A stretch of DNA of 64,000 nt, from assembly GCA_010909165.1 (NCBI GenBank), contig MU008182.1, forward strand, positions 372,001 to 436,000, given 5' to 3'. The DNA comes from Anthoceros angustus (lineage: Eukaryota > Plantae > Anthocerotophyta). Position 1 is the stretch's first letter; each line of letters begins with the position of its first letter. The translations under genes were made by a program, and so were the position numbers. This document shows, piece by piece, positions 3,001 to 63,314 of this stretch. Under the pieces are notes generated by a model that was given only the letters and a program-made list of their open reading frames with translations, searched no databases and was not told the origin of the DNA.

Positions 3001-5147
3001 CCCCAGTAGCGGAGATGGTGGCCTCGGCCGCGCACCTGTTTCTCCTTCCCTTCCCCGCCTTGGTAGTGTTTGCTGGCGTGGGGTGCACCGCCTACATGGT
3101 GAGGCTGCTCCCCGTGGTGCGCCTACCTACCATGGTTGTGCCTACCAGTGGCTGCCCACCCCTTGGGTGGCGCCTCCCTACAGGGGTAGTCAGCCGGGGT
3201 GCCTCTCGTAGGCACAAAGGAGATGGTGGGGACTCCCCACTCTCGGCATCACCCCTCCTGTGGTCCTTCTCTCATAGACCACCATCGGCCTTCTTGACGC
3301 TTCTTGCTCTTCTTCCCTTGCTTGCTCACTGTGGAAAGGATTCCCACTCGGCAACTTTGTTGCCTCGAACCTTCTCCTCTTGCTTCTAGCATTTTGTGGA
3401 GTCGACCTCCCACCGTCTTCGCAATGCAAAGGCAAAGGCCTTTCCAACCTCGGTGGAGATGGATGACCTCAAAGGGATGCCATGCATCTTCAAGCTCCTT
3501 GCTTGTGAGAAGTCCCTCGGTTTCCCATAAATGCACCAAATAGGTGCTAAGGTAGCGAGGGCCTTGGCCTTCCTCATCCACAATTTGGCTTGAGGAGCTT
3601 CTCTCGATGGTGTATAGGCCTTCGCATGATAGTCCCCAATCCGGCTTGGCTCCCATGGAAATCTTCCACAAAAATTGGAGGAAGTTGGTCTTTGAAATAA
3701 GAGTGCGTTGGTAATTTACCAACCCCAGCACAATCTTTGCGAAGAGCCTCCACTTGACTCCTTGATGCTCTCGGTCTTCCGACCATTCTTGGCGTGGGCT
3801 TTCCTCCATCCATCATGTCGAGGAACTCCTGCGGGATGTCGAGAGGTGTCCTCTTCCTCCATTCGACCTTTCGAGGAGAGCAATTCGAGCTCTCCTCCTC
3901 GGTCTTCCATACACTGTCGAATACTTGGTCCAGCGTGGATCGTTCTAGCATTCCTTGGTCGGCAGGCTTCCGATTGATGGAGGTTGATGTAACACTCCTC
4001 AATCAATTCCAAATTGGTGTAGGCCCATTGGCGGCCATACACCCATCCCAATTGGATGTTCTCCTCCTCGCCTTGCGAAAATCAACCAAATCTGGGGTTG
4101 AGCTGCCCGGCAAAGCAAGTGAATTGAGGCATCTCGACCTCACCTCACAGTGGCGCAGCTCACCTTCTTTCCTTTCCTCCTCGCGAGGAAGAGCCCTTGG
4201 TGGCTCCTTCCCTTGCCTTTCCAGCTCGAGGCATGGTGGCGTTCCCTCGCTCAGGAAGGATTACTCTCCAATTTGAGAGCTTCAAAATTTCACTTGACAC
4301 TCTTCCTTCCTTGTTGTGGTAACACACACTCAGCGGCCTCGTTCTGAATTTTTCAGTGCTGTAACCTTCTCCGTGGCCTTCCTCCGCGTGATTCTCCTCT
4401 TCCTCTCCAATTTTTCACTTGCTCTCCAAGTGCTCCGCCTTCTTGGCTCGCTTCACACTTCCTCTTCCTGGTTGGTGCGTGGTGAGCTCCTTCCTTGCGG
4501 TACTCGGCTTTCTTCCTTCCTTCCTTCCTTCCTTCTTTGGGTGGGTTCTTTCTCGATGGGCGCCGCAGCTCGCCTCGCTCCCGGCTTGCTCGCGGCGATG
4601 GCGGCTTTCTTCCTTCCTTCCTTCCTTGCTTACGCTCCAACTCAGTCTCGTTCTAGCTCTTGCGAAGTGGAGGCGGCGCACTTTGCCCTTTGGATGTACG
4701 CCACGGCGGCGCACAACCCTAGATTGGATTCATCATTCCAAAATCCTAATTCTACCTATTTTCCTATCACGCTATTCCTAATTAATCGCTTCTAAATTAA
4801 TATTTATTCCCTATTGGTGAGCATATATAGTGGATATCCCCTCTATTCTAAATTTCCTTTTAGCGATTGACCTACCACGGTGCCGCGCTTACCGACCCTA
4901 CGGCGTGTGTGGCGACCTACGGTGATGCCGACCTACCGCCCTTTGGACGCCTACTCGCTCGGGGTCGTTTCGACCCGTTCTTCTTCTGGGATATCCTCTT
5001 GCCTTCCTAACAATATCCTACAACTCCGACTTCAAGATTCTCGAGAAAATTTCTTGGCATGCTCCTCTTCAATCGTTCTTAGCCAAAAAAATCAAACTTG
5101 TTGTCTTGGGCTCTTTTGGGCTGGTTGCCCAAACTTTTCGTTCCACA
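1..5147 (-). repeat. Gypsy 3' LTR (partial, begins before the window)
   Basis: Ends ...ttccaca at 5147 (TG start on the minus strand) directly beside the PPT. Collinear with 19530-24167 and 46205-50807. Confidence 0.88.
150..4740 (-). pseudogene. LTR-internal coding-like region (charged/coiled-coil segments plus a domain resembling Athila-type accessory plant transposon proteins), frameshifted as assembled
   Basis: Peptides conserved across LTR copies: NIQLGWVYGRQWAYTNLELIEECYINL, DIPQEFLDMMDGG, KWRLFAKIVLG, YLSTYLVHLWETEGLLTSKELEDAW. A diverged homolog sits at 56000-57690. Confidence 0.6.
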
Positions 5148-5160
5148 TACTCCCCACCTC
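5148..5160 (-). promoter_or_regulatory. Polypurine tract of Gypsy copy 1
   Basis: Minus strand GAGGTGGGGAGTA immediately before the LTR start TGTGG. Same at 31809-31821. Confidence 0.85.
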
Positions 5161-5179
5161 ACTGTTTGCGTCCTCGCAA

Positions 5180-8100
5180 ACAATACTCAGTGAGGTACTT
5201 CTTGACCTTCCACCCATTGACTACGGTCGGCAATTTCGCCGTGCGGTTGCAGATCCATTCTCGTATCTGCGACCACCTCGTAAGGTCCCATCCATCTTAG
5301 CCTAAGCTTCCTGGAAAGTCTAGGTACCGACTATCATATAGAAGAACCAAATCCCGTCCACGATAGCCTCTTGCTTCCTCAACCTCCCATCATGCCGATC
5401 TTTTACGAGTTCACGAATCCATTTGTTTCTTCTAAAGCATCCTCCCTCGTTCTTCACCTCTATGAATGATTCTAAATCCTATCCATCCTCCATGATCATC
5501 GTTCATCCTCCATGATTACAGGTGGGTACTTCAAATTCCAGGCATCACGGGTGACATGCCATCGTTAGATAATAAGGGGTCTTCTTTGGTGGTTACCTTT
5601 CTGATCCTGTAAGCCCGATGCGAATGCAACTTAGCATCCCAATCATACATGTGTCCACGATACCTTGGTGAGGATTGTGCGAGCAACCCATTCGTCTTCT
5701 CCGTTAATCCATTCGCTTTGGGGTTGTAGGGGTCGTCTTCGATGCGAATGTTGAAGTAGGTGGTTTTGACGGCGAGTTGAGGAAATGTGTCCCCGTCGTG
5801 ACCAACTCTAAAGGACATCCATACGGTTATGATGTTCTCGAATAGAAACTTGGCTCTGCGGTCGTCGTCCTTCCTTGTTGCTTGACTTCCACCATCTTGT
5901 ACAATAATCCGTAGCCACCAAAATGTCTTGCTTCCTCGTCCATTGCGTTGGTGGTTTGATCGGTCTCTGATCGATTCCCCACTTCTCGAGCGGTGCTAGC
6001 GGCGGGATGTAGGTAAGAGGCCATTGTGTCGACAACGTGGGCCGTCCAACCCTCGACACGCATCACACCTCGGGTGAACTCCCACACATCCTTTTGCATC
6101 GCCGTACAAAACCCGGCATTCAAAATCTTCTTAACGGTCACTGCGAATAGTGTCCACCTGCCTCTTGCATGTAATGCCTCGTGACGGAAGCCTCCTTAGC
6201 CGAGACAGGCGGATCTTTTCGTCCGGACCCAAGTTTATGGGACACACCTTCCCGTATGCGATGAGTGCGGCTTTATGGAGAAAGACCGCCCGTCCTTCCC
6301 TTGACAACCCATCGGCATGGTTCCATGCTCCGAGAATTCGTACTTCACTCAACAAATACCTCGGGCATGAACGCCCCTCGCGTTCTAATCTTCTCCTTCC
6401 AGGTGTACCACGTCTCCTCCTCCTAGGATGTTCGTTAGTGGCTCCAAATGGCGTGTATCCATCCTCGGCCCACTCCGCCCATCTTGCCGTTCCTCAACTT
6501 GGTTCGCATGTTCTTCCTTCATTAACGAGTTGATTTTGCCTTCTAACCCGGCTGGGTCCATCTCGTGCTCCATGGCGACCTCCTCGACTTGTTGCACCTC
6601 CATGGTGATTTTGAGGATTGCGTCCTTAACTCTCCCTCGCAATTTTTTCAAGCTTGTCATGGGATGAGCTCCTTCCTCGCCCTCGCACCCACCTCCCTAG
6701 GCTTCTCCTCCTCGCGCCTCATGGCGCCCTGACCTCGCCAAGTGGGGGCCTTCCGTCGCTCAGCGGTGCTCTCATGTCGTTTTGCTTCTTTGCGTGGCCT
6801 CCACTTGCAGCCCTCACTGCTCACCCTTGAGGAGAATTCAGCCTCCTCCTTGCGCCCATGCTGGCGCCCTCCTATCTCTCGGTTCCAGTTGTCCTGCTGC
6901 GCTTTTCACTGCTGCGCCTTCTTGCTTTGGCCCCTCTGGCAACAAGACTTGGTCAATTCTTAGGCCGTCGACAACATGCTCACCTCCTTCCCTTGACTTG
7001 GGTCATGGTAACCAACTCCTCGTCGAAATCGATCATCGTGGCTTCAAGTCGCTCTCCGGTCTTCGGAGAAATGAAATCGGCATTACGATGTTGCTTCACT
7101 GGCCGGTTTCGTCATAGTCAAACTCTTGCAGCGATAATACCCACTGGCGATCCTTCGACAAATCGGCTTGTTGACAAGATACTTCAAGCAAAATGGTCGA
7201 CATGAGCGTTGCAAGCGGATAGTGTCTAAACTTCTTACAGAGTAAATGATACCAAGACCCTCTCCGTGGTTGAGTAGTTCTTTTCAGCATCCGTGGTATC
7301 TGCATAGAAAATCGGATGATCCGTTTCTTCTCATCTTCGACTTAAAGGCGGTCCCAATAGCATAGCGGACACATCCGTATACATGAAGCGGTTTTCCCAA
7401 TCTGGTTGTAAAGTTGGTGCGCTCACCAAGCATCCTTCAAGCTGCGAAAAGCCTCGCGTCATCCATTCGAAGGTGTATCCTTTTGGTTAATTGTGTCAAC
7501 AAGGCGCCTTCTTGGCGAAATCCTTGATGAACCTCTGTAATACCCACTAGCCCTACAAAAGCTACTTTTCACCGTGCAGCGTCCATCTCGACTATCCTAC
7601 CTTCTCTTTATCTACCAATCCTCGAAACTCGATGTGCTAATAGAATGCCCTCCGTCATGCCAAAATAACACTTCCACGGATGAAGTTTCATGTTCGACTC
7701 TGCATTTTGAAACATTGCCTCAAATGGTCTAAATGCAGGTTCCTTCTCCCAAATACCACGAAATCATCCGGAATACCTCCATGAACTTCCTCAGAAAATC
7801 TCGGAATATCGCGTTCACTACCTGGAAAGTGGCGGGGCATTACACAAGCGAAGGAGCTTGAATAGCGTAAGTTCCCCAATCCGTCGTGAGCGTTGTCTTG
7901 TCTGATCCTCCTCAGCGAAATTTGATTGTACCAGAATATCCATCGAGCTGTACATCTCATGCCATCAGTGTCAACACCTGTCCATGAAAGGTAAAGGGTG
8001 ATGATCCTTCTTCGTTGCCTCGTTGAGTTTTACGAAATCTTGACACACCGCACCTTTCCTGCTGCTTCTTTGGTACAATCACGATGGGGCGACCCACTCC

Positions 8101-9086
8101 TTTGGTGAGCAGGATAAATCACCCACCTCCAAGTATTGGTCGGTGATCCTTAACAACCATGGAATACTTGGGATTCATGTATTGCTTGATCCGCCTTTGA
8201 GTCTTGCCCTCCTTCAAATCTATTCGATGTATTCCAGTTCTTCGGTATCATGTCATTAATCTTGAAGGCAAACACATCAACATATTCTCTAAGGACCCTC
8301 TGAAACTCATCTTTTCTATGCCTAGGTACTTAGAAATCTTGACTACCTTGCTAGGTTCTAACTCTAGGTCTTCTACCGCGGGATCTACATATGTTCCTCT
8401 GGTGCTGCCTATCTTGGTTCGGATCCCTCTTAGGAAAGTCTCGCTCATAAGCTTTGCCCTTCAAAGGCTACTCCTTCTCTATGGGCCTCATCCTCGGACT
8501 CCTCTGACTTCCTCTATATAGCAGGCATACACCAAATCACTCTTTATTTGACCTCGTGAGGACCCCGATATGCTCGATCCTTTGCAGGAGCTTACCCCGT
8601 GCTACAGGTGTGTACCGTCGGTGGGTTGCGAGACTCCCCTCATAAGGAGCCTTACTCCATGACACAAAAGCAATCGCCGCAGTCGTATCTTGGACTTGAA
8701 GGTGATGCCACTCGACCAAAATCAAAAACACCGCAGCGATTACCATACAACCAAGGCCTACCTATCAAAACCTTATAGCCTAGATCGAGCGGTGCATCAC
8801 AATGTAGGTAAGATGGAAGGTGAGTCCCCAATTCTGATGGGCACGTCCTTGACACCCCTAGTGGCTTTCTCCTTGCAGTGGCCATCCGTAAAAATACTCG
8901 GGCGGGTGAAACTCGGTGAATCGAGTTGATGAGCCGTCTCCTCGTCATCAAGTTGACTCCATCCGAATCTAATGGCACGTCGGGCACAAACACCCGCAAT
9001 CTCAACCTCAATCTGGGTGCCCCTAAATCAATGAGTTCGACCACATTTACCTCCATGGGCTTTCTCCCTCCCCCTCTTGGATTCAC
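5180..9086 (-). pseudogene. Gypsy pol (protease, RT, RNase H, integrase), frameshifted as assembled
   Basis: LDSDGVNLM and LIGRPWL (protease); YNQISLR, FGRRNLHLDHLRQCF (RT); LEKWGID, ILVATDY, PYNPKANGLTEKTNG (integrase). Confidence 0.9.
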
Positions 9087-9347
9087 GATGAAAATAGGTC
9101 TAGATTAGGGCACTATTCATTAGGGCCTCATAACTTAAACATTATTATTTACCTAGGGTTATTTAGGTAGTTAGTAGTTATATTAGTTATATTGGTTACA
9201 ACAACTTACGGTTGCAACTACTTATGGTTGCAACCACTTATGGTTGTAACCACCCAACTACCCAGCCTATTTAAAGGCTTGTACTTTACTCATTAAACAC
9301 TTACATTGTTTCTTCTTCTTCTAATCTAAGAGCTCTGATTCTCATCA
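9087..9347 (+). repeat. Copia A 5' LTR
   Basis: Matches 16067-16318. Contains 16-bp GGTTGCAACCACTTAT-type repeats and TATTTAAA. First T missing. Confidence 0.93.
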
Positions 9348-9358
9348 TGGTATCGAGC
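9348..9358 (+). promoter_or_regulatory. Primer binding site, tRNA-iMet
   Basis: TGGTATCGAGC, the canonical TGGTATCAGAGC with one base lost, directly after the LTR CA. Confidence 0.85.
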
Positions 9359-9533
9359 ATCGTTGCTCTCTTGCTATGCTTATGTTTCTTATATATGAGG
9401 AGATTATTTACAAGGCACTCTTAAATCTAGCATTCGTCTAGATGGAGTGCTATTGTTCTACATTCTCTATTTCACCAATTCTTCATCTCTTCCTTTAACA
9501 TGCTTATATGTTTCAATCTTCTATAATTTCTCC

Positions 9534-10001
9534 ATGGACTTCAATTCTATTAGAAGGAGAAAACAGAAGGTTAAAAGGAAAGAGAATCTCATTAGGCAAC
9601 AAGCTATTGAGAGTGAAATAGAACAAATCTCTTCATCCATAGCAAATTTCATTGCATCAATTTTATTTCCAAAACCGGATCAAGGGAAGCTTATCAAGTT
9701 ATCAAGACTTCATTTACTTGAATACTTCAGCCCTCTTCATATTAAAGCTTTGGAATTGGCCCTTAACCATATTCCAAATTTAATAATTGGATTAAGTTCT
9801 TCCCGTACTCCTGTTTTGACAAATAAAAATAGAATTCAAACTCCATCTCTTCATGATTTTTATAATCAATTTTCATCTCTTAAAATTCAGGTCTCTAATC
9901 TTCAAACTGAATTATTTGATTTGAAATCAAAATTTTCTTTGTTTTCTGAGTTTAATACTAATCAAGGATTAGAGAGTATGTCATCATCTCCGAAAACATG
10001 A
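9534..10001 (+). CDS. Copia A upstream ORF or Gag N-terminal extension (basic N-terminus, coiled-coil heptads), unknown function
   Basis: 155-aa ORF from ATG 9534 (MDFNSIRRRKQKVKRKE...FSSLKIQVSNLQTELFDLKSKF). Conserved in copy 2 (~36225-36680). Lies upstream of the canonical Copia Gag start motif. Confidence 0.55.
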   Translation: MDFNSIRRRKQKVKRKENLIRQQAIESEIEQISSSIANFIASILFPKPDQGKLIKLSRLHLLEYFSPLHIKALELALNHIPNLIIGLSSSRTPVLTNKNRIQTPSLHDFYNQFSSLKIQVSNLQTELFDLKSKFSLFSEFNTNQGLESMSSSPKT

Positions 10002-10179
10002 TGGATGAATTCTATATGTGCAATAAAATTGAGCATAAGCCACATAGCACTTTGTCCTTTAAGGACGATTAGCTATGGCGAGTGATTGAAGAAGAATTTG
10101 AAGCTACCCAAAACTCGCCTATGGGTAATGATAATGTCCATCCTCCCACACATTATCATTTTGGTGATGGTTTCAAGAG

Positions 10180-13100
10180 AAAGATAGATTCAACGGAAAG
10201 ATTATGATATTTGGGCATTACGTATGCGAGGAGCATTGAGACAAAGAGCATTATGGGGTATTGTTGATGGATCCATAACGAGACCGAGGTCCGATGATGA
10301 GCGAGAACTTGATTTCACGGGCCGAGGATGAGAAGGCACAAGATTTATTAATAAGTGGACTCTCTCAACAAATGGTCGGGCATGTTGCAGCAAAACATCT
10401 CATGAAATGTGGTCTCACCTTACTCAATTATATTCATCACAAGATGTAATGAGCATTGTGGCGACTTCGTAACTTCGTAATTTATTTATGAAAGAATCCG
10501 ATACTATCGAACATCATATTAATGCTTTTAGACAAGCACGTTCCCAAGTTGAATCACTGGTGTACCTATATCCGAGATGGAAGCTTATGTCACCCTTCTA
10601 TCTTCATTGCCTCCCTCCTATCGTCCATTCATCACTACTCAAAAGCGCTTATTCGCAATTCACGAGAACTGCAGATGATGGCACAAAGGGTTTGACATAA
10701 GTGTTTACACGGTCGGAGCACTTCTCCGAGGAGGAGGCAAGTAGGCGCCATTCTCACTCCAGCCTAATAAACAACAAGTAATGTACTTGCAGAGGGTAGA
10801 GGAAGAGGGCGAGGCGGGGTTACTCTTCCCAACGCCTCCATATTCTTCGCCAAGTACGAACATTGGAGAAAGCTCTTCATCGACACCTTCAAAGGGTAAG
10901 AAGAAGAGCGGCATTATATGCAATTGGTGTAGGATCCCTAACCATATGGAAAAGGATTGTCACAAAGAAGAATGGTGAACCTCGAGGAGGCTTCACATGG
11001 AGTTAATGTAGCATCTAAAAGCAAACTTCATCAACTCCAATTGCTCACGTATGTTTGGCATCATCCAAGCCCTAATACCTCACGGTATTTAGACAGGTGG
11101 AGCAACATCACATATATGTTACAACAAAAGTTATTTTCAATCATACTCACCAACCATGTGGCACCAAGTCATCCTCTTGGGAGATGATCACAACTTATCA
11201 AGGTCGGTTCATTGTCTTGACATGTGATTACGGACAAGTCCTTCACCTCCACCAAGTACTCCATGTTCCATTAATGTGCAAGAATTTATTATCGGTTGCA
11301 AGTATTTGTCAAACCCATTCCATGCGGTGACCCTTTTTCAGATAGTTGCTTTCTCTCTCATGTAGGTGATAGCAATCATATTATTTGTAGTGGTACTTTA
11401 GAAGATGGCCTTTATAGATTATCTCCTAGTAGGAGGTCAACAATCTTGTCACCAGTTCTTCTCAAAGTCCCCTCCATCAATGTTATGGCATTGTCGCCTT
11501 GGTCACCCAAATAGTCAAAACTCACCCGGATGTCTAAGGAAACTTTTACGAAACCCATGTCTTGCAAATGTTGGGCATTTATCCAGTGCGAAACTTGTGT
11601 CCTCACAAAGCGTCACCAAGAGCCTTTTAAAAACAAATCTCCACAAAGGGCAAAGAAACCTTTAGAGATAGTGCATACAGACATCTGTGGACCTCTATCT
11701 ACATCTTCCTTTAGTGGAAGTAGGTATTTTTTGACTTTTATAGATGATTTTTCCCGTTTTGTCTCCTCCTATGTCTTGCAACACAAGTCCGATGCTTTTC
11801 AATTTTTCAAAGATTATATGAAATGGGCAGAGACTTACAGTTATGCGAAAACATTACGTTCGACAATGGAGGTGAATTTACATCTAATCGATTTGAGGAG
11901 TTTTGTCGGCGAAGGTATTGCTCAACAACTCACTGTCTATACTCCTCAACAAAATGGGAATAGAAAAATAAAAATCTGCGTTTAAGAGATAACAGTTGCT
12001 TATTAACACAAGTTGCCTAAGGTTTATTGAGGCCCTTCTTCGCAACCTATCTTATCAATCGCTTACATCGGGACACGGCATGACGCCTTATGAAGCGCGT
12101 TTATTGGCAAGAAACCGTCCATTGATCATCTTCGTATTTTTGGATCACCGCATATGTTTTCATTCCTAAAGCATTACGTAAGTTGGATCCCAAGGCAGCC
12201 AAGTATCTTTTCATAGGATATCAAGGCATTAAAGGGTATAAGTTATATAACCCTTCAACAAGACAACTTCTTTATGCTCGAGTGTTACATTCCATGAGTC
12301 TTACCTCTTTTCTCCAAGGTGGGAGTTGAAGTCGTTGACTCTGCGATGATGCTAATGATTTTCTACATTTGATGATCCTAATCCCTTCCTTTCCTTGTCC
12401 CTACTCCTCGTGTTCCTTCTTGACCCCATGTGCGGAGGAGGAGGAGCCTCTTCCACCTTCATCCGATCCCCTTGAGGCCATTTCAAGATGCTATACCTCC
12501 TGTTCAAGATGATAATGATCGGTTGGAGGCGGTAATCAAGAAATGGATCCCTTAGAACAAGAAGATGAACCGGTTCTCTGGAAGACACACACGCAAGGTA
12601 CAACCTTAGATCACGTCCACTCATCTCGGCCTGCTGGTTGGAAAGAACCCCTTTGGGATACCTTGCTATTTTTCCCGATTCTAATTCTCCGAGTCCCTTT
12701 ATAATCAAGGCATGTACCAGAGAACTTAGAAGAGCCTCTTACCCTAAAACAAGCCTTCTCTTCTCCTCCAAACATCTATGGAAGGAAGTCAGATTCGGAG
12801 TATAATTCCCTCATTAGTAATTCTACATGGGAATTAGTTGAACCTCCTAAGGGTAGAAAAATAGTAACCAGCAAATGGGTATTTAAGATAAAGAGAAAAG
12901 GAGATGGATCCGTGGAAAGGTATAAAGCACGTCTAGTTGCTAGAGGTTTTACCCAAATCCACGGACTAGACTATATACCTTGGGCCACTTATGCTCACAG
13001 CCAAGTTTGCCACTCTTCGCATGATCTTATATATGTGCGACGATCTTGAACTTCATATGATGGATGTGAAGACAGCATATTTGTATGGCGCTTGAAAGAA

Positions 13101-14236
13101 GAAATATACATGAAGCAACGAGGGTTATGAAGTAAAAGGCAAGGAGCATTTAGTATGTAAATTGATCAAGGGTCTATATGGACTCAAACAATCCGCAAAA
13201 TTGGAACTTGACCATCCATATACAACTCTCGAATAAGGGATTTAAGCAAAGTAAAGGCGATGCTTGCTTATATATTTACCTTAAGGAAAATGATATATTT
13301 TACCTTCTATTATCGTCGATGACGTCTTATGGCAACAAACTCTCTTATTCTCCTATGAGATAAAGCATGGCTTGGACATTATATGAAATGACCGACAGGA
13401 GAAATGAATTATGCACTTGGTGTAAATATTATCCGCGATAGGAGTAATAAAAAGTGAGCATAGTTCAAACCAAGTATATAAAGGAGAGTTTAGCAAAATT
13501 GGAATGGAAGATGCAAAGCACACCCACTTTTGCTAGTGGCATCAGCTTACTTGATATGAGTCCTAAGAGTGCTCAAGAGAAAATGGAGATGGCATCCGTC
13601 CCATATCGACATCTTGTCGGCACTCTCATATATTTAAGCAATTTTACTAGACACGATATTTCTTTTGAAGTCGGTTCACCTCCGCTTTTGGAGAACCCGG
13701 ACATCAACACGGATGTCGATTAAGCGTATTTTTCGATACCTTAAAGGGACTATGCAAACGGTGACATTTAAGCATACCAGCAATCAAAACATTAACACTT
13801 ACGGCATGCCGATGCGATTATCTGGTGATCACGATGAAAATCCGTATCGTTATGTTTTACTTCTTGGAGGAGCTCCAATATCATGGTCGAGTAAGAAACA
13901 GCTACCATTGCCTTGTCTAATCGAATCAATATAGAGTACTAACATCTATTTCCAAGGATATAGTATGGTCTAGGCTAATTTTGAGTGAACTTAATCACCC
14001 TCAAGAAACCCAACATCTCTTTTAGTGATAGTCGAGCCATAGCACTTGCTAGAAACCCTTTTCCATTCCAACCAAACACATAGCTGTTGAGTATCACTAT
14101 ATCGGAGAGAAGTTGGAAGATAACACTATAGATATCACTTATATACCAACACAAAACAATCCAAATTTGTTAACTAAGTCATTAGGGAGATTTGCATTTA
14201 AGACACATGAAAATGTTAGGTATTCAAGAGGTTTAA
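10180..14236 (+). pseudogene. Copia A gag-pol, frameshifted as assembled
   Basis: FNGKDYDIWALRMRGAL..LWGIVDGS; CNWCRIPNHMEKDC knuckle; HTDICGP..YFLTFIDDFSR; KWVFKIK..YKARLVARGF; GGAPISWSSKKQ; TKHIAVEYHYI; ends GIQEV*. Confidence 0.93.
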
Positions 14237-14265
14237 GTCATAGCTAGTATGTGTCAATGTATTTT

Positions 14266-15818
14266 CTATAGTCCACACATCTTGTCTAGCATAGAAATTT
14301 CCTCTCCTAACTCTATGTAGTCCTCACATCGCTTATCCTCTCTTTCTAATACCCGGAAGGATCCTACAATACACACCATGGGTTATAAAGTGAAAATGAT
14401 GAAAAGATAGTACTTAAGTCGTTAGGTTACTTCGTACAAGTGTTTGGTGTGTCCTTCATATTTTTCACATGGGAAGCACAACCACACCATCTTAATCCCT
14501 CTTTTCACATACATACTCCATGGGAACTTCATGGTCATCCTTTCCTCCGGAAGAACCAAGTAGGTTGCCTTGCATAAGTTTCAGTGGCGGTAGGAACTAG
14601 GAATTTTCCTTTTGCACTTGCTCTCTCTTGAGTAGGTCGTAGAGGTAGGGCAAATCTCACATGGCTTGTGCCCACACTCTTATCTACACCGCAAAATAGC
14701 GAGATATTATTAGGAAAATGTTAGTTTAGTTTACCGGTTTTTGGTATCATCTTTCCTACTCACTCCTTGGCTCTTCTGCCGCTATTACATCCTCTGCGCC
14801 ATTTACACAAGGATGTGATCTCCACAGCTACCTCACAAATAACTCGAGGGTCTCTTCGGTTTTATAGAGTCCTCGACTCTTCCGAATCTTCATTCATTTT
14901 GAAGTCATCATATTCGGCCTCGATTGGTGATGCGGCTTTATCGGATTATCTACATCCATATTTATTAGCATTTTATGCACTCAAAATTTTTATGCAATTT
15001 ATTTTGCAATTTATTGACTTACCGATAACTTTGACTTCTCTCACAACGACCTTGGATTTTTCCACGTCACCACGTGATATCATCCTCTTCATCGGGTATG
15101 TCATCACTCTTTGCAATAGGTTGACACTGCAAGAAATTGATCAAGTTTGGATCATCAGGTTCCTCCCAAGATCCGATAATGTCGGTACAACTTCATCCGG
15201 TACCACAAGTGGTGTGCACGGGCTGCGTTTTCCTTCTTTCTTTCTTCGCAAGTATCCTCCTTCGCCACCAAGTGCTTGTTTGATTTTATCAAGACCCATG
15301 TTTCACCTCACGGTGGGGCACGGACCCTCCAATCGTCAAGCTGCAGATATATTTATCAAGCAACTCCAGCAATTTATCAATTTATTTAGCAATTTCAGCA
15401 ATTTATTTCAGCTATTTATATAAATCCAGCAAATATTTCAAAATTTGATTCGAGGCGAGCACCTTCTTATGCGCACGGCCTGGATTCCGCCAAATTCGCT
15501 ATTTTTCACCGATCTTGGCAACTTGATTAGCGCGCGGTGGCACTTGATCGCGGTGGATCGCGATGATCGCGCTAAATCAAGCGAAATTTTTCTGAGTGAT
15601 GGATCTCTGGCGGATCGGATCGGTGGTGGATGGCGCGATGGTGGAGTGGATTTGGATGGCTACGGAGGCGGATGGCGGCGGCGGATGGCGGCCCGGCCGA
15701 TCAGGGATCACGAGGATTGAGGTCGGAGCCGCGGGGAGAAGGCGGTTTTGTCTCCCGTTTCGTAAACCGCCGGCGCGGCCGCCTACCGCGTTCACCAGGC
15801 GCGAGAGGGCCGTTGCTT
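14266..15818 (-). other. Putative antisense five-exon gene carried by Copia A (copy 1)
   Basis: Four AT-rich minus-strand segments bounded by GT..AG: 15341-15462 (AAG|GTGCTC..TCTGCAG), 14950-15022 (G|GTAAGT..GCTAAT..GTAG), 14684-14763 (GTGAGT..CTAAC..GTAG), 14364-14430 (GTAACC..GTAG). TATA upstream. Confidence 0.65.
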
Positions 15819-15880
15819 TATTTATAGGCCCGAAATGGGCCTATCCTGTTTTTTTTATTTATAGGCCATTTTGTGGCCCG
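15819..15880 (-). promoter_or_regulatory. Antisense Pol II promoter: two TATAAATA boxes with site-II-like GGCCCA/TGGGCC motifs
   Basis: Minus-strand CCTATAAATA at 15819-15826 and 15856-15863, with GGCCCGAAATGGGCC between them. Conserved at 42549-42593. Confidence 0.6.
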
Positions 15881-16066
15881 TCTATTGTTTTTCATTTTCT
15901 TTATGCCTATATTAAGTCCTTATTTATGACTTGATTATATGTTAGATGCTTAAGTTTTTAAGACCTTTTCTTAAGCGGATAACTTTAGGTTTAGTGGGAG
16001 CCTATTTAACATTTAGGCCTCATTTTAAAGGCTAGACTTCACCCCTATATTCATAGTGAGTGGGAG

Positions 16067-16318
16067 TGATGAAATAGGTCTAGATTAGGGCACTATTCAT
16101 TAGGGCCTCATAACTTAAACATTATTATTTACCTAGGGTTATTTAGGTAGTTAGTAGTTATATTAGTTATATTGGTTACAACAACTTACGGTTGCAACTA
16201 CTTATGGTTGCAACCATGGTTGTAACCACCCAACTTCAGCCTATTTAAAGGCTTGCTTTACTCATTAAACACTTACATTGTTTCTTCTTCTTCTAATCTA
16301 AGAGCTAAATTCTCATCA
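16067..16318 (+). repeat. Copia A 3' LTR
   Basis: TGATGA...TCATCA after the PPT (16055-16066). Confidence 0.93.
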
Positions 16319-16323
16319 TTCAC

Positions 16324-18915
16324 GATCGCCTCCTTCACAATTTTGCGGGATCTTGGACTTCTGAGCAAGCATCTCGGGCCGACCACAAATTCGCGGTCAA
16401 GTAATCGTCGTGGCCAGAGATTTTATCCGACAAAGTTTCCTCCCGCTTGCAGCTGATCGACTCCGACCTTATTGGTAAAGTTCGATTCCATGACCCCCTA
16501 TCGGGTGGGTTCCCATAGTGGATCACGATTCACAGCTCTGCGACCCTGCTTCCGTGTCGGGTGAGCTGTTTAATTCATCTTCCGGCATTGCGCTACTTCT
16601 CGACTAATGTCGGGAAGCGATTCGTTCCTCCCCTCCTTTGGTCCCTTCTGCGTCCCGCCTAGGGTAGTCTGTTTGGTCTATCCGTGCGGACTACGGGGTA
16701 GTACCTTCTCTGAGCGGTCTTGTTCTGCTCCTCTTGATGCTTTGAACACATGGCGTCTCCGGAGCCATGGTGAGTCATCCCTCACCTTCCTCCGTTTCCT
16801 TTCCTCATCTTGCGCCGTTTTCCATGATCGTCCTTTCTCGCGGCCCGATGTGGTTACCACAGCCACCATCAACCTTTCATCCGCTTATTTCTCCCTCGTA
16901 TCCTTCCTCACGATACGGCGTCTGAATCCTCGATCGTACTCCGCTTCCACCTTCAACAGGTGTTGTGGTCACGGTAGTGCGGTTTTAGGTGTTGGGTCGT
17001 GCCTCTCTTCGCTGCTGTAAAACGACTCTGGTGTGGTGTCACTCGCGTCACCCCATGCATCGGGTCCCCATTTTATGTCCCAATTCCTTACATACAGCAA
17101 GGGTACATAACCTACTTGCTTCCGTGGTTACGGGCATTCGTTGAGTAGTGTCACGGGGCTCCGCAATTATGACACCCACATGGAATTGCCATCGTTGCGG
17201 ATCGGTCTCCATTGTCCGGCGATGTCGGACGTGAGCCATACCTTGAGGGGCTGATGCGGCGGTGGTAAGTCGCTCTCATTGATTGAGGTGGTCGGCTTCG
17301 GTGGCGCTTGCACATGCGCGCCTCGTCACGTACCAATAATCTCTCACAGCATAACGGTTTCCACATGATTTCTGACGTGCGTGGTGCGAATACATTCTCG
17401 GTTGGTGTGTCCCGTTTGATGAGCAGCAATACACCTGTCTACCGTGAAGGAGATCTTCGTGGAGCTTGATTCTTCCGCCTTGACCTCCAACTCGGTCAAC
17501 GCTTGGTCAAAGCCTCCACTTGTCCGACAATCCCTCCTCCGCTGACGTTTCTCCCTTCTCCATCCGACGGACCGTCTTCCCTTTCCTCTCCTTCTCCAAT
17601 GCGTTCCGCCTCCTCTTGTCGTTTTGACCTTCTCGGTCCTTCCTCATTCGTCGTTCGTAGGCCTTCTCGATTCCTCATCCGATGTGGAGCCTTCACGAGT
17701 TCATTGTCCTCACTTTCGATGTGGAAGAGGCGGCGCTAGAGGTAGAGGAGAGGCGAGCTAGATCTCCTCGATCCTTTTCTCTTCTTATGACTCGCCTCTT
17801 CTTCCTCCTTCTCCCAGCGGACTCCCATTCCTCATTCAGCGGAGGCCCCTTAGCGTCTTCGTTCCGCTGCGGTGTACCTCCATTTTCGTGACAAGCCACT
17901 CACAAACCAATCCAACGCTTGTTCTTGAGTACCCGAGGTGGGTGGATCTCCGGCCTCTCGGGTGCACATTTGAACCGATCGGATATCCATAAAACCTCTC
18001 CACATAATCGAACAACGACTCTCGTTTCTTCCTTGGAGGGTTCTCAACTTGGCCAAGTGTGTGGTGTGCGTGGCGAGCCCTCGGAACCGATTCAAGAAGG
18101 CTTAAGAGCTTCCCAATCGTCGGCGCCGATTATATGTGCGACCATACCCTTGGGCATGCCCTCTCGGCGATCCGGAAGATCGCGATCGCTCGGCGACTCC
18201 ATCCTCTAAATTTGCGTGGGAGGCGTGCTCGAAAGTTCTTACAAGCGCCTCGCATCATCTCCCTTCTTCTTCTCGCCCGAATTTGGCGTATTCTTTGGCG
18301 ACTATGAAGTTAGGCGGTCCTCCTCCTCCACCAACTCCACTCATGTTGCTCGTTCGGGTGTCCGGACCAACACTCCTCTCGCCGGGGTAACGAAACAAAT
18401 CGGGATCCTTGAGCACGAAAATCTTCTACCAGGAGTAGCGACCTCCCCTAGTCGTCCCAAAGATCAATCGATCGGTGATTCGATCGAGTCGTTCCAAATC
18501 CTCCGACCAAGCACGAAACTCCCGCTCTTGGCGACCTCGTCGTCCTTTGATTCATTTGGAAGATGAGGTGGTGCTTTGAAGCAAAGCGTCGCGGGCGTTC
18601 CGCAGCGGTTGTGAAAGGCAACTTCGTGCTCGGAGGCGCGGCCTTCCTAAATCACACCGACTTCTCTTTCGACCTCCTTCCTCTCGCCGGTGATCTCGCC
18701 TCTTCTTCCTCCTTCTCCCTGCAGCCGTTCGCACCTCTCGCCTTGGCGTCACGGCGACTTCCTCGCGTCCTTTTCTACTTCCTCCCTGTCCACGAGTGGC
18801 GGCGGCGGTCTCTTCCCTTAGCGGTTTCTTCGTAAAGCTCGTCTCTCGCGGTGGCGGTGGTGACCTTCAGCGTGTATCTCCCGAGATCGACCCCTACGAC
18901 ATCGCAACCATCCTC
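16324..18915 (-). pseudogene. Gypsy gag (retrotransposon capsid domain plus three CCHC-like knuckles)
   Basis: DWEALK..LNRFRG capsid-like motif; CHNCGAP, CKELGHKMG. Copy 2 shows CSICHQTGHTNREC. Confidence 0.8.
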
Positions 18916-19080
18916 ATGTCCTCCAACCCACGGTGTTAAGAGGAAAGCAAATCACACCCGTTTAGTGTCTCAACGGTCACCCTATGACACTTAGGCGTGA
19001 AATTCTTCTCACCCTATGGTGACTCGGTCCCTTTGAAAAACGTGCTAGATGGAAACCACAAAACTTCAACCTTTCAACAA

Positions 19081-19098
19081 CAAGTCCCGACAGCGCCA
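19081..19098 (-). promoter_or_regulatory. Gypsy primer binding site (non-Met tRNA, isotype not assigned)
   Basis: Minus TGGCGCTGTCGGGACTTG just after LTR end ...TACCACA. The plus strand reads like a tRNA 3' end (CAAGTCCC...GCCA). Copy 2 reads TGGCGCGCTG at 45781-45790. Confidence 0.75.
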
Positions 19099-19102
19099 AA
19101 AA

Positions 19103-22100
19103 TGTGGTAGGGAGAATCCGGGGCACTCCCGGGTCCTCCCACTATAAGGCCACACTTATCACTTTACCCGTCGTTGGGTTTCGTCCCATGAGACTTGTGT
19201 GAAAGTTCGAGGCCTTGATGCCAATCGCTACACGCACACTCTCGACCTTCTAACAAGCAAGGCGCCCTACTCTCCCTCTCACGGTGCACCACTTGCCTTT
19301 GCTTGAAAAATCGCCAACCTCGACCTAGCGACACAAAACAATTGGTCACGCCTCGACGAGCCTACCACGGGCGCCGAGGACCCCCTGGTTCACACGATTT
19401 GTCCCTACTTCTAAGACCAAACTTGACCTACAGCACACTTGCGGTCACCTCGGACAGCCTACCAGGCCCGGGGACCCCCAGTTCACACCGATTCGTCCCT
19501 ACTTCTAAGACCAAACTTCTCCACTCGGGGCGCTCTTTTACTTGCAGTTGGGATTCGTCCCTTAGGCTCTGCTGTGGCCTTCCACCTACACCTCTAATCC
19601 TCTACTCATCTTCTCATCTCCTCATCCTCTTCCTCCTAGTCTAACCTCGATTCGGGCTTCTTGGTTTCGACTCGCCCTTACAGCTGCTGCACAGGTCCGC
19701 CTCCACCCAAGTTCTTCCTTGGGCGGTTGCTATGAGTTTGACACGACGGTGAGAACCTCGAGTCTTTCCTGTAGTCTACCCTCAAGCCGAGTTCTGGGCA
19801 TTTGCCACACACCCAAAGCAAAGCAATTTCACGGCAACCATTCACAAAGCAACTCGTTTAGGCACTTGCGTGAGCAAGTCCTCCACCAAGCACTCACCAC
19901 ATGACTTCCTCTCTGCAGACCGTGTTGGCTCCGGCCACGAAATTCCTCTGTAATGGCAAAGGACTCGATGGCGTGGGCGCAAGACATGATACTTTACTTT
20001 GTGAAATCCTCCTCCTCTTATAGGAGGCCTTCCACATACAACCTCCCTTAGGTGACCCTCTGCAGGTCACCTTTTCCAATTTTCTATTATTTCCTACACT
20101 TGACATTTAATGTCGGCACCTAAATCTATTATGCGATCCTTGGTAAATTCTATTCTAGTAACTTCACCTAAGACCATCCTTGAAGGATGTCGTCTACACC
20201 ACCTATCCTTCCGTTCCCCAAAGCTCATTTATGGTCATTGACCATTCTTAGTCTTATCTCATTTGGGGTGGTGACATGGCCCTTGAGGATTGGCTCCCTC
20301 GCCCTCCTTTTGCTCTGTCCCTTCCCGGATCTTGTCGCCTTGTGGGGCAAGTACCATCTGCCCTTCCTCCATCTCCAGGGCGCCTAAATCTGTTATCTTC
20401 CATCGGTGCCTCCGCCTTTTTCTCCGCCCGCGCTGGTCGCGTTCATCGACACCCTACGCGGTAGTCGGCGGACTAAGGTGGTGACTACCTACCATGGTAG
20501 TCTCTCCTTCTTCTCCTTCCTCTCCATCGGTGATGTCTCCACGGGGTGAGTTCCTCTTGCTCCTTCCTTCTTTGTTTGGTTTGTCCATACCTATCGGAGC
20601 ATGTCTTCAAAGAATCTTCCCCATTCGTAATGTTGCTACTAACTCCTTGGGCCTTCTTGCGTTGGTCTCCTCTCGGGCCTGGCTCCTCCCTTATCAGGTG
20701 AGGAACTTCTCACCCCTCCCCTTCCTCGAGGTGGGACCCGTCCTTAGTCTCCTCCGGTGGGGTTGTCTCTCCCACCACCCCTGCTCCTCCGGGGTATACT
20801 CGGACCCCGGCTCCTTCATCCTCGGCCTCCAGACTCCCAACTCCACGGGCTGCCCTACCGGTGAGTCTGGCGGACTACCCGTGTGTCGATCTGCAGTGGT
20901 CAGCGGACTACGTGGTGGTGGTCACCACCGTGGTAGGTTGACCCCGGTGGGCTTTCCCCTCCTTGCTCTGCGCCACCTTCTACCTTTGGCGCTCTGGCGC
21001 TCTTCGTCTCCACTCCTCAGTTCCTCGGAGTCCATTTCGTGATGGCCTCATCAAAATCGGAGGCCTCTGCTTTCTGCTCCTTTCATCATCATCATGAGGA
21101 CCCAATGTCCTCCTCTTGGCCAAAAAAGATCTCATTGTTGGCCTTCAAAATTCTATTGTGGAGGTGGGCCCCAAGCTATGATATTGCATTTGGAGATCAA
21201 TCTCTGGGCCACTCTCCATCTTCACACCTACCTTTGTAGGCGTCCCTTGAGGTGGTCAATTCCCCACCTTGACATGGAGGTCACATTCTCCTCCTTGCTT
21301 CCTTTTTGGTGGCCAATTTTACTGAAGGGCATAATCTGCCAAAACCTTCGCTTCCTTACTACGCATTCTATGTACCACTTTCTTGTGGTACTCCTCTCTG
21401 GACCTTTTTCCTTCCAAGTCCTCTATTCGTTGAGCAAGCCCTTCCCTCCACCAAGCATCTTTCTCGCGCTCCAGCTGTTTCTTTGGTTTTGAATTTCCAG
21501 CTCGGGCCTTCTCTTCCAAACTAAAGGCTCTTCTCAACTCTTCCTTCATGTCCGGATCTGGATGGCTTGCGTAGCCATCACTTCTTCTTGCGTCCATTTC
21601 TTTGGACCGCTACCTTCTCCAGCCTCTGTTTTGCCCTTTCGCTCTTGCTCTAATTGGGCAAAATGCTCCTCCATATACATCTCCATGAGTCTCGTTGGGT
21701 GGTTGCTCGGATGGCTCTTTCTTGGTTTGAGCCAACCTCCCTCAAGACCTTCTCCGCGCTGATCCATAAGGTCGGAGCTTCTCCTGACCTTTTCGGCTTG
21801 GCTGCCTTTTCGTCGGACTCCATGGCCTCCAATTGCCATTTGGTCCCTGCCTTCCTCCGGCCATGTCTTGAGATTTCACTTCTTCTTGACATGCCCACAA
21901 GGAGGCGTTTCTCTAGCCTTCAAATCCACACGGTGAGTGCTTCAAGCGGCAATTCTCCTAGGGGTCCTAATTCCACCCCTTCTTTCTTCTTGGAAATCTC
22001 CAGCTCTCACCTCTCGGGCCATCGGCTTGCTTCGTCGCTCCATCCGCCCTCCCACAGCGCGGAAGATGGTGGTTTGCGCCGCCCTCATGGCCTTCTCCTT

Positions 22101-24167
22101 CCCTTCCTTCCACCGTGAGGCTGTTTGCACGTGGGGTGCCCCTGTGAGGTGCTCCCCAGTGGTACCTACCATGGTGGTGGCCCTACAGTGATGCCCACCC
22201 CTTGGGTGGCGCCTCCCTAGGAGTGTCAGCCGGTGCCTCTCGTAGGCACAAAGGAGATGGTGGGGACTCCCCACTCTCGTCACCCCTCCTTCTCTCATAG
22301 ACCACCATCCGGCCTTCGGCTTGCTCTTCTTCCCTTGCTTGCTCCTGTGGGGAAAGGATTCCCACTCGGCAACTTTGTTGCCTCAGACCTTCTCCTCTTG
22401 CCTCTAGCATTTTGTGGAGTCGACCTCCCACCGTCTTCGCAATGCAAAGGCAAAGGCCTTTCCAACCTTTGGAGATGGATGACCTCAAAGGGATGCCATG
22501 CATCTTCAAGCTCCTTGCTTGTGAGAGTCCCTCGGTTTCCCATAAATGCACCAAATAGGTGCTAAGATAGCGAGGCCTTGGTCCTTCCTCATCCACGAAT
22601 TTGGCTTGAGGAGCTTCTCTCGATGGTGTATACGCTTCATGATAGTCCCCAATCGCTTGGCTCCCATGGAAATCTTCCACAAAAATTGGAGGAAGTTGGT
22701 CTTTGAAATAAGAGGTCGTTGGTAATTTACCAACCCCAGCACAATCTTTGCGAAGAGCCTCCACTTGACTCCTTGATGCTCTCGGTCTTCCGACCATTCT
22801 TGGCGTGGGCCTTCCTCCTCCATCCATCATGTCGAGAACTCTGCGGGATGTCGGTGTCCTCTTCCCCCATTCAACCTTTCGAGAGAGCAATTCAGCTTTC
22901 TTCCTCCGGTCTTCCATACACACAATACTTCTCACGGTCCAGCGGGGATCCGTTCTAGCATTCCTTCCGGTGTGCGCCATTGATGGAGGTTGATGTAACA
23001 CTCCTCAATCAATTCCAAATTAGTGTAGGCCATTGGCGGCCATACACCCATCTAGTTGGATGTTCTCCTCCTCCCTTGCTAGAAAATCAACCAAATCTGA
23101 GGTTAAGCTGCCCGGCAAAGCAAGTGAATTGGGCATCACAAGTTCACCTCCCCACAGCGCGCTTCTGCTTTCTTTCCTTTTTCTTCTCGCGAGGAGGCCC
23201 TTGCAGGCGGCTCCTTTTCCACCTCGAGGCATGGCACCTTCCTTACTCCCTCGCTCCTAGCAAAAGTTACTTCCCAATTTTCAGCGTTGTGTGCTGCTTC
23301 ACTTCCAAACACTCCTTTTCTCGTGATGACTCCCGACTGAGCACCACGTTAGCCTGTCTTGAGCCTCACCTGATTTCTTCCTTGATTTCTTCTCCAGTAG
23401 GCGGTGTGATTTTCCTCCTTCTACTCTCACTCTCCTTCACCTTCGCTTCCGGCTCCAACTCCTCTGCGGTGGCGGCTCCTTCAATGTGTCTCTTTTCCCG
23501 GTATTGAAGAGCTTCTCGGTGCAGGCTCGGTGCTTGCCTCCTCTTTCTCCTTTCAGCTAGTCTTCTCAGCCGCGCCTTCCTCTCGTTCGTGGAGTCGCGG
23601 CAGCGGCAATGGCGGCTTCTCCTTGGGCTTCTTTTGCGCTCGGCCGGTCGATCTCTTGGGAAGTGAGTTCGCCTTAGCTCGAAAAGGAAGTTGGCTGGCC
23701 CCCTGCACACTTTGGATGGGCGCCACACGGCCACACAACCTAGATTTTGTGCATCATTCACAAAATCCTAATCGATCTATAATACCTATTTTCCTACTAC
23801 TAATTAATCTCTTGCTAATTACTCTTATATTTATCCTCTATTGATGAGCATATATAGTGGATATCCCCCTTTATTCTAAGTTTCCTTTTTGCAGATTTGT
23901 CGTACGGTAGTGCGCTTACCCATGATGGTCTGCTCCCTTACTACGGGGCGTGTCAGCGACCTACGGTGGTACTGACCTACCAACCTTTGTGCCCTTACAC
24001 AAATGCGGGGTCGCTTGACCCGTTTTCCTCTGGGATATCCTTTTGCCTTCCTAACAATATTCCACCGCTCCGTTAAGATCTTGAAGTTTTCCTCATAACC
24101 TCTTAGTCGGTCTTAGCAAACCGTCTTACGGCGGTTTGGGTAGTTGCCCAAACTTTTCGTTCACACA
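19103..24167 (-). repeat. Gypsy 5' LTR, ~5.07 kb
   Basis: TG...CA termini, PBS adjacent, right end homologous to 5110-5147. Confidence 0.85.
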
Positions 24168-31600: not shown

Positions 31601-31839
31601 GTGCGACCTACCAACCTTCGCCGCCTCACGCCTGGGGTCATTTGACCGTTCTTCCTCGGATATCCTTTTCGCCTTCCTAACAATATCCTACACTCTTCAA
31701 GATTCTCGAAAATTTCTTGGCATGCTCCTCTTCAATCGTTCCTAGCCAAAAAAATCAAACTTGTTGTCTTGGCTCTTTTGGGCTGGTTGCCCAAACTTTT
31801 GCTCCACATACTCCCCACCTCACTGTTTGCGTCCTCGCA

Positions 31840-34800: not shown

Positions 34801-35780
34801 CCCACTCACTGGTGAGCACCGGGTAAATCACCCCAGCCTCCAAGTATTGGTCGAGCTGATCCTTAACAACCATGGAATACTTGGGATTTTGCTTGATCCG
34901 CCAGTCTTGCCCTCCTTCAGTCTATTCGATGTATTCCCAGTTCTTCCGGTATCCCTGTCATGTCAGTAATCTTGAAGGCAAACACATCAACATATTCTCT
35001 AAGGACCCTACGAAACTCATCTTTTTCTATCTCGCCTAGGTACTTAGAAATCTTGACTACCTTGCTAGGTTCTAACTCTAGGTCTTCTACCGCGGGATCT
35101 ACATATGTTCCTCCGACTGCTACCGGTTCGGATCCCTCTTCCGGAAAAAGTCTCGATCATAAGCCCCGCCCTTCCAAAAGGCTACTCCTTCTCTATGGGC
35201 CTCATCCTCGGACTTCTATGGCTTCCTCTATATGTAGCACACCAAATCACTCTTTATTTGACCTCGAGGGACCCCGATATGCTCGCCCGAGGAGCTTACC
35301 CCGTGCTACGAGGTGTACCGCCGTGGGGACTCCCCTCATAAGGAGCCTTACTCCATGACACAAAAGCAATCGCCGCAGGTCCGTATCTACCGGACTTGAA
35401 GGTGATGCCACTACGACCAAAATCAAAAACACACGGTACCATACAACCAAGGCCTACCTATCAAAACCTTATAGCCTAAATCAAACCGGCGCATCACAAT
35501 GTAGGTAAGATGGAAGGTGAGTCCCCAACAGCACGTCCTCGACCCCCAGTGGCTTTCTCCTTGTCGGCCATCCGTAAAAATACTCGGGCCGGGTGAAACT
35601 CGGTGAATCCGAGTTGATGAGCCGTCTCCTCCGTCATCAAGTTGACTCCTGATCCGAATCTAATGGCACGTCGGGCACCAAACACCCCGCAATCTCAACC
35701 TCAATCTCGGGTGCCCCTAAATCAATGAGTTCGACCACATTTACCTCCGCCGACCGCTTTCTCCCTCCCTCGCCTGTGGA
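31840..35780 (-). pseudogene. Gypsy pol copy 2, including a locally intact RT core ORF (34235-34873)
   Basis: SEWVAPIVIVPKK..VRVCQDFRKLN..FLDGYSGYNQI..LPFGLCNAPATFQR..VFLDDF; WMGPYEVV (GPY motif). Confidence 0.92.
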
Positions 35781-35785
35781 TTCCC

Positions 35786-43046: not shown

Positions 43047-43051
43047 TTCCC

Positions 43052-45625: not shown

Positions 45626-45794
45626 ACGGTGTTAAGAGGAAAGCAAATCACACCCGTTTAGTGTCTCAACCATTCACCCCTATGACACTTAGGCGTGAAA
45701 TTCTTCTCACCCTATGGTGACTCTCGGTCCCTTTGAAACATACTATGGGAAACCACAAACTTCAACCTTTCAACAACAAACAGCGCGCCAAAAA

Positions 45795-63220: not shown

Positions 63221-63314
63221 GTAAGCATCCATGCCCTTTTCTTACTTCACTTGAACCCACGCCTGTTGGTTGCTCCAGGAGCAACTGAGCACATCACGTC
63301 GGTTGCTTGTCCAG

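Follow-up and report, generated by a model that had tools for sequence, protein, structure and literature searches.

A candidate intron-bearing antisense gene unit between pol and the 3′ long terminal repeat of a Copia retrotransposon in Anthoceros angustus

We analysed a window of 64,000 nucleotides (nt) from Anthoceros angustus (assembly GCA_010909165.1, contig MU008182.1, positions 372,001 to 436,000 of the forward strand; all coordinates below are counted from the first letter of this window). Between ~9087 and 16318 the window holds a plus-strand long terminal repeat (LTR) retrotransposon of the Copia type, in which a spacer of 1.8 kb separates the end of pol from the 3′ LTR. Read on the minus strand, 1.6 kb of this spacer, between pol and the polypurine tract, displays the anatomy of a gene transcribed by RNA polymerase II (Pol II), with a promoter-like module, five exons and four introns:

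15816–15880, minus strand: promoter-like module with two TATAAATA boxes (TATA) and GGCC...GGCC palindromes, including GGCCCA
15463–15815, minus strand: exon 1, a C-rich leader with 60% GC and no ATG, scrambled between the two copies of the unit
15341–15462, minus strand: intron 1, 122 nt, GTGCTC...TGCAG, GC 0.30, within the 5′ leader
15023–15340, minus strand: exon 2, with the first ATG of the unit at 15299–15297
14950–15022, minus strand: intron 2, 73 nt, GTAAGT...TGTAG, GC 0.23, with CTAAT 17 nt before the acceptor
14764–14949, minus strand: exon 3, the least ORF-like exon (ORF, open reading frame)
14684–14763, minus strand: intron 3, 80 nt, GTGAGT...TGTAG, GC 0.35
14431–14683, minus strand: exon 4, part of which contains Cys and His; each copy needs one or more frame changes
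14364–14430, minus strand: intron 4, 67 nt, GTAACC...TGTAG, GC 0.33
14266–14363, minus strand: exon 5, an open stretch ending at the stop codon 14268–14266
40975–42593, minus strand: second copy of the antisense unit (copy 2), within a duplicated block and inside a Copia element at 35787–43047

The two TATAAATA boxes lie at 15863–15856 and 15826–15819, each after a GGCC...GGCC palindrome, and transcription would start near 15795. Exons other than the leader have a GC content of 0.42–0.47, and the dips in GC coincide with the intron borders. At its other end the unit meets pol tail to tail, the antisense stop codon (14268–14266) being 29 nt from the pol stop codon (14234–14236). A preliminary description of the locus, made from the letters of the window, had named these elements, and the boxes with their GGCCCA motifs, the GC-rich first exon, the tail-to-tail end and the donors, acceptors and coordinates of the four AT-rich introns (122, 73, 80 and 67 nt) are exactly as it had them. 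Introns 1 and 2 also share short repeats of the AAATTGC / ATAAATTGC type, of which copy 2 has one extra unit in intron 1.

We compared the intron pattern with chance by filtering both strands of the whole window for segments of 60–130 nt that start with GT, end with TGYAG, have a GC content of at most 0.36 and are flanked by sequence richer in GC. Twelve sites passed this filter, four in the antisense unit, three in copy 2 and five elsewhere (three of them unique) in 128 kb of strand; the plus strand yielded no site. The four AT-rich GT..TGYAG islands of the unit are clustered within 1.1 kb on one strand. Shuffled sequences in which composition was kept in 60-nt blocks contained a mean of 0.31 intron-like sites, and none of 300 shuffles reached four. 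Such a cluster of intron-like segments far exceeds what chance would produce, and it occurs on the minus strand only.

The leader between 15815 and 15300 (~390 nt without intron 1) is free of ATG, compared with 5.7 expected under a first-order Markov model (P=0.0026), and the equivalent stretch of copy 2 has a single ATG, which lies within an intron. At 15299–15297, the first ATG of the unit stands in a strong context (A at −3, G at +4). Avoiding stops along the four coding exons takes 4.9 frame changes per kb in copy 1 and 6.2 in copy 2, as compared with 6.0–6.4 for the damaged gag-pol and ~10 for both shuffles and the reverse strand of gag-pol. Both the ATG and the frame test were devised post hoc, after the data had been seen, and are given modest weight. 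The Fickett coding statistic was left unused: it separates exons (0.76–1.02) from introns (0.61), but fails on gag-pol (0.67) and scores the leader high.

The element that carries the unit is made up as follows:

~9087–16318, plus strand: Copia LTR retrotransposon (host element), delimited by LTRs, target duplication, primer binding site, polypurine tract and domain order
9087–9347, plus strand: 5′ LTR, with the TTCAC target duplication at 9082–9086 upstream and the primer binding site downstream
9348–9362, plus strand: primer binding site of the tRNA-iMet type (TGGTATC..GAGC-type), directly after the 5′ LTR
9447–14236, plus strand: gag-pol, in many short ORFs due to insertions and deletions (indels); pol stop 14234–14236
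16054–16066, plus strand: polypurine tract, adjoining the 3′ LTR
16067–16318, plus strand: 3′ LTR, followed by the TTCAC target duplication at 16319–16323

Its LTRs are ~255 bp each, 95% alike and bounded by TGATGA...TCATCA, and the 5-bp duplication TTCAC is found on both sides. Pfam detects the domain order Pol_BBD (11097), rve (11530–11985), SH3_retrovirus (at the equivalent position of the second Copia copy) and RVT_2 (12912), with scores that are low because the reading frames are broken. With this set of LTRs, target duplication, primer binding site and polypurine tract, and with integrase placed before a reverse transcriptase of the RVT_2 type, the element belongs to the Ty1/Copia superfamily. 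Each LTR contains one AT-rich, intron-like GT..YAG segment of 100–110 nt on the minus strand (16189–16080 and 9209–9100; donor GTAAGT or GTAACC; stricter filter), which may have arisen by chance.

Neither gag-pol nor the antisense exons can be read as continuous frames; both are broken into fragments, gag-pol in both copies of the element. In the alignment of copies 1 and 2, gap columns are more frequent (8.7%; 1085 gap openings over 19 kb) than substitutions (4.4%); AT-rich stretches are identical over hundreds of bases, and the GC-rich leader is scrambled. Short-read contigs of the same species likewise differ from the window mostly by gaps, for instance by 14 gaps versus 8 substitutions over 557 nt. 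Contigs also show 2-nt insertions relative to the window in exon 4, at 14498 and 14584/14588. A host gene in the same window (ankyrin + BTB, 61851–63224) has an intact frame of 457 codons. We infer from these comparisons that transposon sequence in this long-read assembly carries indel errors of a few per cent (2–4%), worst in GC-rich stretches, and the pattern suggests that they concentrate in transposons, perhaps in methylated sequence. Errors at this rate explain why gag-pol is shattered in both copies, and they render the broken frames of the antisense unit uninformative; more generally, judgements on transposons in this assembly that are based on ORFs are unreliable owing to indel errors of several per cent.

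Presence of the unit across the Copia family was judged from short-read contigs of the same species and of one related species, dips in cover counting as no finding. In the same species, contig depth is 46–76 over pol, 76 over the bridge from the end of pol into exon 5 (14107–14355), 54 over 14488–15044 (exon 4, intron 3, exon 3 and intron 2) and 55 over 15815–15969 (promoter module). Contigs of the related species cover 14142–14678 and parts of exon 3 at ~90–93% likeness, with intron 4 and part of intron 3 present as DNA. Minor variants in the family have deletions of 99 or 267 nt downstream of the pol stop, with joints that lead from 14232 to 14332 and 14500, respectively, and a variant of the related species lacks 96 nt of exon 3, from 14778 to 14875. 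As no contig joint falls at any intron border, no intron-less copies were seen. The occurrence of the unit at pol-like depth in the same species, and in a relative, marks it as a family trait rather than a private insertion, which bears out the earlier proposal that the Copia family keeps it, for the 3′ half and the promoter module in two species.

The second copy within the window, in contrast, proved to be of little use as evidence. A 26.7-kb block occurs twice within positions 1–50807, each time with the same Copia element nested in it. The block is a large minus-strand, Gypsy-like element with RVT_1 at 34238–34873, and its LTR-like repeats of 3–5 kb are found at:

1–5137: LTR-like repeat of the Gypsy-like element
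19530–23234: LTR-like repeat of the Gypsy-like element
28660–31806: LTR-like repeat of the Gypsy-like element
46207–50807: LTR-like repeat of the Gypsy-like element

Both Copia copies lie inside a 19-kb match (4616–23137 versus 31306–49772), and the second (35787–43047) has the same flanks and the same target duplication as the first. Repeats at matching positions of the two blocks differ by ~4.3–4.4% substitutions and are the closest pairs; repeats inside one block differ by 5.7–10.6%. This ranking indicates that the 26.7-kb block was duplicated as DNA, in tandem, and that both Copia copies derive from one insertion. Introns shared by the two copies are therefore uninformative on retrotransposition. 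The preliminary description had pointed out that copy 2 keeps the 73-, 80- and 67-nt introns exactly, and they are indeed identical letter for letter (41727–41655, 41465–41386 and 41143–41077), but as evidence of conservation this identity fails, the insertion being the same. Its weight is lessened further by the fact that AT-rich stretches are the parts of the assembly least affected by indel errors. The acceptor of intron 1 is not retained in copy 2.

The internal region of the Gypsy-like element contains, on the minus strand at 43962–44774, an ORF of 271 amino acids (aa) with weak, below-threshold matches to the low-complexity, splicing-associated families SR-25 and Cwf15-type; these probably reflect a region rich in Arg, Ser and Lys. 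A third Copia remnant (53455–54789, minus strand), unrelated to the other two, retains an unbroken RVT_2 ORF of 254 aa (E 1.6e-64); no LTR pair is detectable for it within 50–62 kb.

The antisense model was searched against protein collections exon by exon, with the exons unjoined and the frames as in the assembly. Exon pieces of both copies had no match in Pfam even at E up to 10, Transposase_28 / TRP28 (PF04195) being likewise absent; neither a PDB sequence search nor ESM Atlas features gave anything usable. Queried with the second half of exon 4, a word index of 5.8 billion proteins yielded no candidate. The longest stop-free piece of exon 4 (58 aa, copy 2) was used as phmmer query against 1.84 billion representatives; two matches (E 3e-5 and 7e-4) were rejected as false, because they are tandem-repeat proteins (ankyrin; H-NS-like repeat) in which summed weak matches inflate the scores. 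The peptide fragments quoted in the preliminary description all exist, but they are spread over different frames, and no continuous ORF can be read from them in either copy. Its suggestion of a TTF-type zinc finger found no backing in Pfam, in phmmer against the 1.84 billion representatives or in the PDB, libraries that lack a TTF profile; the W..FPW and CFPC pieces are frame-dependent and the motif is split across frames.

No paralogue of the antisense unit was found elsewhere within the window, no Rfam family matched the window, and an exact-sequence look-up of two window ORFs returned no record. Relatives were also sought through the C-terminus of pol. This search found no viral contig, one short metagenome-contig locus at 65% identity and protein-library matches at no more than 65%; four loci from distant Copia elements (L002–L005) showed no similarity to the spacer.

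On the basis of these results we consider it very probable that an intron-bearing gene unit, real or formerly real, travels with this Copia family. Whether such a unit is an expressed and probably coding accessory gene of the element is, judged from its sequence features, an evenly poised question. We propose, at a probability of roughly one in three, that a Copia family, and perhaps more than one family of this genome, stably harbours and makes use of an antisense gene that has several introns and a promoter of its own and codes for a protein; its introns would survive each retrotransposition cycle. On the evenly poised reading, the spacer would be a complete antisense Pol II transcription unit belonging to the family, with the minus-strand order of a doubled TATA module, an ATG-free C-rich leader of ~330 nt interrupted by the 122-nt intron, the AUG at 15299, three further introns and the stop codon. 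Introns antisense to genomic RNA are not splice substrates in the RNA that is reverse transcribed. Because the unit is antisense to the genomic RNA and so would stay unspliced there, its introns would be copied into every new insertion. The spliced RNA is predicted to encode a family-specific protein of ~270 residues without known relatives, in which a cluster of basic residues close to the N-terminus is followed by an acidic central part and a C-terminal part containing Cys and His. By analogy with the role proposed for gene23 of maize Grande, this protein may serve the element as an accessory factor in the nucleus. Even without translation, the transcript, as the full complement of the 3′ end of the genomic RNA, could modulate that RNA.

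Several observations weigh against an expressed, coding accessory gene. There is no continuous antisense ORF in either copy, the longest minus-strand ORFs being 45–58 aa; stops interrupt every frame of exon 3, the phases of the exons remain ambiguous, and the plus strand is equally stop-free over exons 2 and 3, where an ORF of 218 aa is found. This plus-strand ORF (14767–15423) overlaps exons 2 and 3 of the antisense unit together with intron 2 and a portion of intron 1, its hydrophobic stretches being encoded by the AT-rich islands. No protein search yielded a homologue of the antisense unit, and the ATG and frame tests have the limits given above. Some splice features are weak, with A exceeding U in two of the four introns and a weak pyrimidine tract in one. 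Copy 2, as its flanks and repeats show, is not an independent Copia insertion. Contig cover is almost nil at 15045–15815, so that family-wide presence refers to the 3′ half and the promoter module only, and one run guessed to be RNA contained nothing from the antisense stretch, which is uninformative on expression either way.

The lack of both a continuous ORF and a homologue would be explained if the unit gave rise to a transcribed and spliced, non-coding antisense RNA that base-pairs to the Copia genomic RNA at its 3′ end and feeds or tunes small-RNA silencing, or that disturbs sense transcription and polyadenylation. Such a transcript would be complementary to the genomic RNA over its whole length, and because the two stop codons are only 29 nt apart, its 3′ end must extend into pol. 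Both antisense promoters and antisense RNAs that do not code for protein have been described for retroelements, including those of the Copia type (PMC7264820). A leader without ATG, with the first ATG after it in strong context, is, however, a signature of a translated mRNA, the exons are depleted of stops to the same extent as gag-pol, and a simple antisense regulator needs no four introns. We regard a purely non-coding RNA as unlikely.

We are similarly doubtful that the unit is what remains of a host gene, or of an orphan gene specific to the lineage, captured in reverse by the founder element and now a functionless hitch-hiker, in which introns, promoter and clean leader would be remnants of the original gene. 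The gene-like anatomy, including a promoter and an intron in the 5′ leader, would fit such an origin, the capture of host genes by LTR elements is known (PMC7264820), and some family members carry deletions, of 99 or 267 nt downstream of the pol stop or of 96 nt within exon 3. A conserved host gene is nevertheless not the source, since no related protein was found among the 1.84 billion representatives, and the window is without a paralogue. Captured genes are usually low in copy number (one or a few) and sense in orientation (PMC7264820), whereas the unit is antisense, reaches pol-like depth and is present in a second species. Compared with a transduced host gene of the Bs1 type, the unit has no homologue, in searches that for the genome covered the window, and it has family-wide depth.

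The explanation that dispenses with an antisense gene, by taking the spacer as non-coding Copia 3′ sequence with AT-rich islands or as a sense third ORF (14767–15423, env-like as in the SIRE lineage), is in our judgement the least probable, for although this plus-strand ORF is the longest in the element and reads through intron 2 and part of intron 1, and AT-rich islands do yield T-rich codons on the plus strand, the splice-signal cluster is far above chance on the minus strand only, and the ORF lacks an ATG near its start, is split in copy 2, is without relatives by Pfam or sequence search, is of ordinary length because the window holds 20 ORFs of at least 170 aa, and with its intact frame of 657 nt would be odd for a real gene amid 2–4% indel errors.

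The proposed intron-split antisense gene would matter in several respects. Among plant LTR retrotransposons, additional antisense genes have been found chiefly in Gypsy lineages, and what they do is still open after 25 years. If the proposal is true, a compact, intron-split antisense gene in Copia extends the phenomenon to the other superfamily and represents a new class of retrotransposon accessory gene. It would also offer a small system for asking whether such genes aid the element, through nuclear import or anti-silencing, or restrain it by means of antisense RNA.

Antisense extra ORFs between pol and the 3′ LTR (aORF-3R) are frequent in plant Gypsy lineages and of unknown function, with maize Grande gene23 (own promoter, nuclear product), rice RIRE2 and Silene Retand with TRP28 as examples (PMC7264820, PMC11963269). 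The Copia antisense unit appears to add to this group. Like aORF-3R, it lies in the interval from pol to the 3′ LTR in antisense orientation relative to gag-pol and lacks clear relatives beyond transposons, and for both the leading proposal is a role in the nucleus or in regulation. It resembles Grande gene23 in having a candidate promoter of its own upstream, which is marked here by two TATA motifs in the sequence and has been shown for gene23. aORF-3R occur in most copies of a family, and the Copia unit is found at pol-like depth in two species for its 3′ half and promoter module. Unlike the unit described here, with four introns in a 1.8-kb Copia spacer, the known aORF-3R are continuous ORFs in 3–6.5-kb spacers of Gypsy elements (Tat/Retand), and introns are not mentioned for them in PMC7264820 or PMC11963269. 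Intron-containing antisense genes in Copia are likewise unmentioned in these two papers and in the plant LTR-retrotransposon survey PMC6317226, and literature searches found no report of any. Whereas the aORFs of the Retand survey are continuous over at least 600 nt, the longest minus-strand ORFs of the Copia unit, split by introns and indels, reach 45–58 aa, and the unit is without the TRP28 domain of Retand.

Within the Copia type itself, antisense promoters have been reported for Arabidopsis AtRE1 and apple Mdoryco1-1, as summarised in the review PMC7264820. The Copia unit shares with these elements a candidate transcription start on the strand opposite gag-pol; by that summary, they provide promoter activity or bidirectional transcription, whereas the unit is predicted to be multi-exon, with leader, start codon and stop codon. 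A further parallel is HBZ of human T-cell leukaemia virus type 1 (HTLV-1), which, as cited in PMC11963269, is an antisense, spliced gene in the 3′ part of a reverse-transcribing element and encodes a nuclear regulator; splicing is a prediction for the Copia unit. The 3′ LTR is where transcription of HBZ begins, and a single main intron interrupts it, whereas the putative promoter of the Copia unit is internal, upstream of the polypurine tract, and the introns number four. The two have no sequence relation, and the comparison is one of analogy only.

In engineered retrotransposition indicator cassettes, an antisense reporter gene contains an intron that is spliced from the element's own transcript. 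The Copia unit and these cassettes share the principle that an intron antisense to an element's RNA cannot be spliced from that RNA, so that the state of the intron reports or survives passage through RNA. The arrangement differs in that introns and gene have the same orientation in the Copia unit, both being antisense to the element, and the introns would thus persist in new copies. The unit would in this sense be a natural counterpart of the intron-marked cassettes with a built-in marker: the introns would be retained in copies made from sense RNA and missing from any that arose from the antisense mRNA.

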